A stretch of 21,942 nt of DNA from Octopus sinensis (Eukaryota), in assembly GCF_006345805.1 (NCBI RefSeq), contig NW_021823646.1, forward strand, positions 1 through 21,942. Direction: 5' to 3'. The notes beneath the pieces were generated by a model that searched no databases, was not told the DNA's origin, and saw nothing but the letters and a program-made list of their open reading frames with translations. A program made the position numbers and the translations under genes. How positions within the stretch are numbered: the first letter of the stretch is position 1; each line of letters opens with the position of its first letter. Shown one piece after another: positions 4,208 through 4,601 of the stretch.

Positions 4208-4601
4208 CTGAGAACGATTGTCTGCAGTTAAGGTCGCTGGCACTCGATATGGAATTGACGCTCTTACTCGATGTTAACTCGGCCTCATCCACAACGTCTA
4301 TGGTGGTCATATCCTGGTTAGTGTCCCTCGGTAAATGTCCACTGGAGCCTGTTGATGAAGTACTACTAGTCACTTCGACCAGCGACTGGCGATAGGGAGA
4401 CGGCAGGATCGCCGCCGCCGCCGCCGCCGCCACGCCGACCGCCTTTGACACCGCTGACTGATGGTTATCGAACTGCGATGAGCTTTCGATATTAGGACTG
4501 TTTAATTCCGATATTAGTTGCATTTTCTCATTGAAATCATTCTTTTGTTGATCCGACCCAGCATCGAACGATTTACTCACAAATTCAGTCAATCTCTCCA
4601 T
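4208..4601 (-). CDS. shox: First coding exon of a short stature homeobox (SHOX/SHOX2-like, paired-class) transcription factor: 131 codons + 1 nt; homeodomain exons lie outside the window
   Basis: Translation starts MERLTEFVSKSFD versus vertebrate SHOX/SHOX2 MEELTAFVSKSFD (11/13 identical, from recall). The ATG at 4601 has strong context (AAGATGG); an in-frame ATG at 4610 has weak context (TCCATGA). The body is Ser/Ala-rich and TF-like with an Ala7 tract. The exon ends CAG|GTAAGT at 4208/4207 in phase 1. Confidence 0.85.

Follow-up and report, generated by a model that had tools for sequence, protein, structure and literature searches.

The window analysed here, a stretch of 21,942 nt of Octopus sinensis DNA, raises the question of whether a Shox gene can be recognised from its first coding exon when the homeobox lies elsewhere. 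A reading frame on the minus strand begins with the ATG at 4601-4599 (MERLTEFVSKSFDAGSDQQKNDFNEKMQLISELN...) and stays open to position 4208, and its first 13 residues, MERLTEFVSKSFD (4563..4601, minus strand), carry the Shox N-terminal signature at residue 1. The exon (4208..4601, minus strand) measures 394 nt, that is 131 codons plus one base, so that the intron following it is in phase 1, and it is bordered by a GTAAGT 5' splice donor (4202..4207, minus strand) in the context ttctcag|GTAAGTCC. The G at 4208, the last base of the exon, is the first base of a split codon, in agreement with the Asp (G|AY) found at this place in the annotated protein. In the variable middle part of the exon, a perfect (GCG)7 trinucleotide run (4410..4430, minus strand) codes for Ala58-Ala64; a C-terminal poly-Ala run was also seen in the Shox proteins of both octopus and cuttlefish. 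Within the intron, a (GT)n microsatellite (4152-4186, minus strand) starts about 20 nt past the splice donor, and a (CA)n run occupies the equivalent position in the cuttlefish-like genomic loci L001 and L002.

When the full SHOX protein was compared with the window by tblastn, the N-terminal motif was the sole match, and no homeodomain-like sequence was found in the whole window, including the first 4.2 kb of intron 1 (1..4207, minus strand), which are rich in microsatellites. The annotated gene ranges, 104 kb in O. bimaculoides and 150.6 kb in O. vulgaris, explain why the homeobox is missing from the 4.2 kb of intron present here, and it is indeed outside the window, as the first-pass annotation had supposed.

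The identity of the exon was established through annotated octopus proteins. The translation of the window, including three upstream residues (MRK), was identical over 134/134 positions to the beginning of the O. vulgaris protein CAI9736718.1 ("stature homeobox 2-like", 324 aa, with a homeodomain and an OAR domain), and 129/131 residues were identical to exon 1 of XP_052830813.1, the 323-aa 'short stature homeobox protein 2' of O. bimaculoides. The complete match to the O. vulgaris protein indicates that the DNA stems from this species or a near-identical one. Both proteins contain PF00046 and PF03826, and in both of them the exon end, ...SFS, is followed by a linker and then by the Shox homeodomain and OAR, confirming that the frame had been correctly assigned to Shox from its letters. 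XP_052830813.1 was retrieved with a chimeric query made of exon 1 and a generic Shox homeodomain, and CAI9736718.1 came from its 90% cluster. The search with the 131-aa exon alone returned two cuttlefish-like fragments and missed the octopus proteins, even the one that was 100% identical, showing that the word index of that search was not exhaustive. The Shox-type paired-like homeodomain, located outside the window itself, was found in the annotated O. vulgaris protein and in cuttlefish cDNA, and the OAR (PF03826) in the annotated octopus proteins and the Sepia protein, all of which end in ...SSIADLRLKAKKHLATLGL.

Taken as a whole, the best explanation, and one we hold with very high confidence, is that octopus has a single-copy Shox gene, orthologous to vertebrate SHOX/SHOX2, whose first coding exon corresponds to positions 4601..4208 of the minus strand; this identifies the window as the 5' end of that locus. 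A phase-1 splice at 4208|4207 would connect the exon with a homeobox exon lying beyond the left edge of the window, which is expected to begin (A[TC])TGTACNAAGGAYAAY... (DCTKDN). We infer the use of this donor in octopus and its joining to the homeobox exon from automated gene models together with cuttlefish cDNA; the window itself holds the donor side of the phase-1 intron that separates the N-terminal exon from the homeobox exon. The predicted product would be a paired-like transcription factor of 320-324 aa, composed of an N-terminal arm (the exon in the window), a short acidic linker, the homeodomain and a C-terminal OAR, and the whole octopus gene would span about 150 kb, whereas the chicken one covers a range of some 8 kb. 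The gene in the window and those coding for CAI9736718.1 and XP_052830813.1 are the same gene with no difference of substance, although both models start at a non-conserved upstream ATG (MRK). The gene, its orthology and its exon structure are already known, and the current annotations of O. vulgaris and O. bimaculoides correctly contain the exon; it is therefore not a discovery.

Direct evidence for the splice junction came from a sister cephalopod. Two cephalopod genomic contigs, L001 (Sepia) and L002, contained the orthologous exon with an identical ATG and identical first 14 residues, and they had in common with the window two conserved blocks (residues 1-34 and DMTTIDVVD.AELT...SFS) as well as the donor cag|GTAAGT in phase 1; the similarity faded upstream of the ATG and past the donor. 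The Sepia Shox protein (311 aa), which belongs to the cluster of the cuttlefish-like fragment, was coded without interruption on more than 24 RNA-seq contigs of at most 2 kb (L009-L012). One source run of these cDNA contigs, SRR19578113, corresponds to a Sepia esculenta juvenile transcriptome (PMC9538352). The cDNA was 99.1-99.7% identical to genomic contig L001 up to the exact predicted last base of the exon; past this point the cDNA read AATGCATAAAAGAC... (E-C-I-K-D, then the homeodomain), whereas the genome read GTAAGT, and when the cuttlefish cDNA was compared with the window by blastn, the match ended exactly at 4208. In cuttlefish, therefore, both the use of the donor and the junction with the homeobox exon were observed directly. 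The Sepia and octopus genes are alike in the motif, the conserved blocks, the phase-1 donor and the junction into the homeobox exon, but they are only about 46% identical over the exon, which has 364 nt in Sepia versus 394 nt in octopus, and a His-rich tract is found in Sepia where octopus has a poly-Ala/Ser tract.

The region immediately upstream (4602..5000, minus strand) probably represents the 5'UTR and promoter-proximal sequence, as suggested by the Sepia cDNA, whose 5'UTR stayed colinear with genomic sequence over 710 nt or more before the ATG (contig L012 versus L001). Nucleotide conservation between the window and the cuttlefish loci was weak upstream of the ATG. Only one patch in this upstream DNA was visibly similar to the cuttlefish-like loci (...TTTCTCTTATAGAAATTTAATAAATTATC...). 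Located 190-245 nt before the ATG, at about 4791-4845 (minus strand), it has an AT-rich, TATA-like composition and may belong to the core promoter or be an element of the 5'UTR.

Two in-frame ATG codons can be considered as the translational start in octopus. Three codons upstream of the ATG at 4601 there is another one (4608..4610, minus strand; MRK-MERL...), the first in-frame ATG after a stop codon, and both public full-length octopus models begin there. If translation did start at 4610, the motif would be held off the free N-terminus. This is a possibility to be taken seriously, to which we nevertheless give the smaller share of the probability, because ATG 4610 has a T at -3 and an A at +4, a weak context compared with the strong one of ATG 4601 (A at -3, G at +4), the upstream ATG is missing from both the genomic and the cDNA sequences of cuttlefish, and 212/237 motif-bearing proteins have the conserved Met as their very first residue. 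This Met, at 4601 in the window, is consequently more likely to be the functional start than the annotated upstream ATG.

The string FVSKSF was present in 237 of the proteins retrieved, in 212 of which the motif begins at residue 1. Comparison of 21 distinct 13-mers gave the consensus M-[ED]-x-L-[TA]-x-F-V-S-K-S-F-[DE], with M1, L4, F7, V8, S9, K10, S11 and F12 invariant and E or D at position 2. The vertebrate beginning of the protein, which the first-pass annotation had cited, was right: 165 database proteins begin with MEELTAFVSKSFD, among them vertebrate SHOX and SHOX2, including human SHOX, and amphioxus Shox, and lamprey has the variant MEELTAFVSKSFE. The corresponding N-termini were MEGLTEFVSKSFE in Solemya velum, MEGLTEFVSKSFV in Saccostrea echinata and MEGLTQFVSKSFE in Dreissena polymorpha among the bivalves; MEQLTEFVSKSFD in Amphibalanus amphitrite and MEQLTQFVSKSFD in Pollicipes pollicipes among the barnacles; and, among the insects, MEQLAQFVSKSFD in the ant Lasius niger, MEQLAQFVSKSFH in the wasp Fopius arisanus, MEQLTQFVSKSFD again in the sawfly Athalia rosae and MDKLTQFVSKSFE in the beetle Ceutorhynchus assimilis. 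In a full-length alignment of 50 proteins, the columns of the invariant motif residues were the only invariant ones outside the homeodomain, a few OAR columns being nearly invariant. The presence of the motif in chordates, molluscs and arthropods places it before the protostome-deuterostome split, as had been proposed, and these sequences indicate that the first 13 residues constitute a Shox-family signature that was already fixed by then.

The specificity of the motif was evaluated by searching 1.84 billion representative proteins exhaustively with a profile, which gave 120 matches at E <= 1e-3, all of them (120/120) containing FVSKSF. A recognisable Shox homeodomain string was present in 23 of these matches; another 24 longer matches had no WFQNRR string, and among these Pfam recognised part of a Homeodomain in four and no domain in the other 20; the remaining ones were short fragments lacking the homeodomain string. 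Every match bearing any Pfam domain had a homeodomain, and no other protein family with the motif was found among the 1.84 billion proteins, only Shox-type proteins or domain-less fragments. A Shox gene can therefore be named without its homeobox, as had been claimed for this locus, and the 13-residue signature suffices to recognise Shox first exons even when the homeobox is 100 kb away.

The vertebrate SHOX/SHOX2 motif (MEELTAFVSKSFD) and the octopus one (MERLTEFVSKSFD) are identical at 11/13 positions, and the order of arm, homeodomain and OAR is the same in both groups. In contrast, the rest of the arm could not be aligned, with Ala and Ser/Thr-rich tracts in octopus and a Gly run and ITYREVLE in vertebrates, and there is one Shox gene in octopus versus two paralogues in vertebrates. 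A possible second, weaker conserved element was noticed about 10 residues past the motif (residues ~22-32), in the forms ITYREVLE in vertebrates, RTYKEVLG in amphioxus, FLHQTVIE in Solemya, TREEVTLL in the barnacle and FNEKMQLISE in octopus; it is missing from oyster and insects, and it coincides with the second of the helices predicted by AlphaFold2 (see below).

The age of the intron was examined by mapping proteins onto genomic loci, an exact translation and GT/AG intron ends being required; intron 1 of the barnacle was left out, and the distances between intron and homeodomain in octopus and Sepia were counted on the protein sequences. The first coding exon ended in phase 1 in chicken SHOX (271 nt, Gly91 split, 24 codons before the homeodomain), Branchiostoma lanceolatum (241 nt, Asp81 split, 23 codons), Saccostrea echinata (250 nt, Glu84 split, 21 codons), Solemya velum (223 nt, Asp75 split, 18 codons), Sepia (364 nt, Glu split, 19 codons) and the octopus window (394 nt, Asp split, 19 codons). 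In Lasius niger, a phase-1 intron at CDS nt 538 splits Gly180, 13 codons before the homeodomain, and a second phase-1 intron lies upstream, at codon 57. The last exon base was G in 7/7 lineages mapped. Other Shox introns were also shared, namely a phase-0 intron inside the homeodomain (VQ|VWFQNRR), common to chicken and Solemya, and a phase-1 intron 65 codons past the homeodomain start, common to Solemya, Saccostrea and the barnacle. In the Branchiostoma lanceolatum locus we observed, just downstream of the real exon 2 (11295-11504), four extra tandem copies of the part of the homeobox exon that codes for residues 123-150 (locus positions 11730-12224; 137-bp spacing, 93-96% protein identity).

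The intron had been said to match that of vertebrate SHOX/SHOX2. Its phase and its neighbourhood did so in chicken, amphioxus, two bivalves, ant and cuttlefish; the exact site did not, the distance to the homeodomain being 19 codons in octopus versus 24 in the vertebrate gene (chicken SHOX), and indels in the linker mean that the position of the intron cannot be aligned residue by residue between phyla. The variation of this distance (13 to 24 codons), the unalignable flanking residues and the extra phase-1 intron of the ant could suggest that introns were gained independently in the variable linker of different phyla and that the shared phase is a coincidence. We consider this very unlikely, given that all seven lineages have a phase-1 intron in the short pre-homeodomain linker with G as the last exon base, that the other Shox introns are shared too, and that six further matches in phase would have a probability of about (1/3)^6 if phases were independent and equiprobable. 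In the simplest reading of these gene structures, the ancestral gene had one phase-1 intron in the acidic linker that precedes the homeodomain, and indels occurred later on both sides of it. The comparison indicates that a phase-1 intron at this place, a few codons before the homeodomain, is as old as the motif.

What the exon in the window contributes to this paired-like homeodomain factor is its N-terminal arm, and the conservation of the first residues leads to the question of what they do. An AlphaFold2 model of the O. bimaculoides protein, based on a 50-sequence alignment, was confident for the homeodomain and the OAR helix, while the arm was disordered except for helices at residues 3-12 (the motif) and 23-36, both of low confidence (pLDDT ~54-65). 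The helical hydrophobic moment of the motif was 0.43-0.63, versus 0.12-0.15 for beta periodicity, and L4, F7, V8 and F12 would share one face of the helix. The model is consistent with a motif folded as a short amphipathic helix right at the beginning of an otherwise disordered arm, and this helix might dock a conserved partner that tunes the activity or the stability of Shox; our best guess is that the motif may be an amphipathic docking helix for which a place at the free N-terminus would be obligatory. Proteins starting with Met-Glu or Met-Asp are typical substrates of N-terminal acetylation, and the motif always begins with one of these pairs, so that its N-terminus is likely to be acetylated.

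A more far-reaching proposal, which we regard as rather doubtful, is that the invariant Met-Glu/Asp start and the FVSKSF helix together would make up a pan-bilaterian regulatory module, either an acetylated helix that docks a cofactor or a degradation signal that sets dosage. If this were true, SHOX dosage, on which short stature in human SHOX deficiency is based, could be approached in a new way, and the upstream ATG of octopus would be a lineage-specific way of masking the N-terminal module. A motif conserved across bilaterian phyla and devoid of any annotated function is an obvious target for deletion and interaction experiments, the more so as the dosage of the Shox protein matters in humans.

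Short conserved cofactor-docking peptides located at or near the N-terminus, in a disordered region, are known in other homeodomain or zinc-finger factors, such as the repression motifs eh1, octapeptide and SNAG described for paired-class and NK proteins. The Shox motif resembles them in being a short conserved N-terminal peptide in a disordered region, but the sequences differ. The eh1 consensus is of the FxIxxIL type (eh1/GEH 'FSIDNIL'), and inspection of the 21 motif variants led us to reject an eh1/octapeptide motif of the Groucho-binding kind because F7-V8-S9-K10-S11-F12-D13 has Ser, Phe and Asp at the Ile, Ile and Leu positions. SNAG was also rejected by inspection, as the N-terminus of the Shox motif is acidic, in contrast to the basic, histone-H3-like SNAG. 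To our knowledge, no link of Shox to Groucho/TLE or to LSD1 has been described.

A different docking site has also to be considered, since the arm could act through an 'LxxIxE' site for PP2A-B56 rather than through the 13-residue motif. The ELM pattern for B56 docking is ([LMFYWIC]..I.E)|(L..[IVLWC].E), and octopus MQLISE (residues 27-32) and cuttlefish MQIISE fit it. The related experimental results found in the literature concern the arm as a whole: mouse Shox2a binds the B56delta subunit of PP2A and is phosphorylated, whereas Shox2b, which lacks the N-terminal region, neither binds PP2A-B56delta nor is phosphorylated (PMC4309068). However, the LxxIxE pattern was present in 4/5 MERL-type (cephalopod) proteins versus 1/232 of the other motif-bearing proteins, and it is missing from vertebrate Shox2a, the very protein in which the interaction with B56delta was shown. 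Being essentially confined to cephalopods, the site cannot explain conservation throughout the family; as a family-wide mechanism it was rejected on the count of 1/232, and that the arm acts through it instead of the motif appears to us highly improbable.

In the open-access full-text literature, no paper or experiment on the motif itself was found, a search for FVSKSFD included; cephalopod and amphioxus Shox, the Shox N-terminus and CG34367 appeared there in catalogue mentions only, and nothing relevant on human missense variants in the motif was found in the literature. The Shox N-terminal signature is pan-bilaterian, family-specific and under-described, no paper on it having been found in open-access full text.

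Several public gene models illustrate the practical use of the signature, which is the repair of Shox models that are fragmentary or start at the wrong place. In O. sinensis itself, the RefSeq model XP_029648015.2 (109 aa) contains only the last exon (C-terminus). Of two older O. bimaculoides models, A0A0L8FKS9 (112 aa) is a C-terminal fragment, and in XP_014788941.1 (238 aa) an unrelated, spurious first exon replaces Shox exon 1. The Argonauta hians model GAB1605264.1 (265 aa) starts inside exon 1 and misses the motif, and KAH3806076.1 (99 aa), a 'hypothetical protein' of Dreissena polymorpha, contains exon 1 only. The orthologue of Athalia rosae, XP_048510624.1 (471 aa), is misnamed 'retinal homeobox protein Rx-B-like'. 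Similar naming problems were noticed in several motif-bearing insect Shox orthologues, called 'Homeobox protein unc-4' in UniRef, and in the SHOX of the cichlid Sarotherodon galilaeus, labelled 'RAP1 GTPase activating protein 1'. The warning of the first-pass annotation that automated pipelines could miss or mis-start the exon was accordingly justified for several cephalopod models, but it did not hold for the current O. vulgaris and O. bimaculoides models, which include the exon, even if they start at MRK.

The conservation of the peptide was also assessed in the window itself. A profile built from 10 non-cephalopod Shox N-termini (from bivalves, barnacle, amphioxus, lamprey, human, other vertebrates and insects) was compared with the six-frame translation of the window and matched only this spot, with 28.6 bits and E = 5e-8; with the same profile, the next best real match had 5.8 bits and the best one among 100 shuffled windows 10.7 bits. 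Between the window and Sepia genomic contig L001, 8 of the 13 motif codons differ and 8/8 of these differences are synonymous, and over codons 1-34 the differences are distributed as 5/2/20 among the first, second and third codon positions, which argues that selection acts on the peptide. Neighbouring DNA full of microsatellites and spurious ORFs, and transcript support that comes from cuttlefish, might suggest an ORF arisen by chance, a pseudo-exon or a relic rather than an expressed exon. This is hardly credible in view of the profile match, the bias towards synonymous substitutions, the expression and splicing of the orthologous exon in cuttlefish and the fact that two octopus annotations independently include the exon.

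Elsewhere the window consists of AT-rich animal DNA laden with microsatellites. No other recognisable genes were found in it, the Rfam and tRNA scans of the window were empty, and a Pfam scan of eight other ORFs of the window gave nothing above threshold. An interspersed repeat of about 200-350 nt, with 61-96% identity among copies, was found at 6817-7362, 9600-9882 and 20862-21276, and also at 7020-7290; behind some copies there is a long (AAT)n tail (e.g. 7353-7700), and the repeat has a SINE-type look, with no tRNA or Rfam match. Finally, two different minisatellites, both with a 39-bp period, were located at 12745-13030 and 14457-14941 (7.3 copies with 93% match in the first, 12.6 copies with 71% match in the second), in a GC-richer block upstream of Shox.
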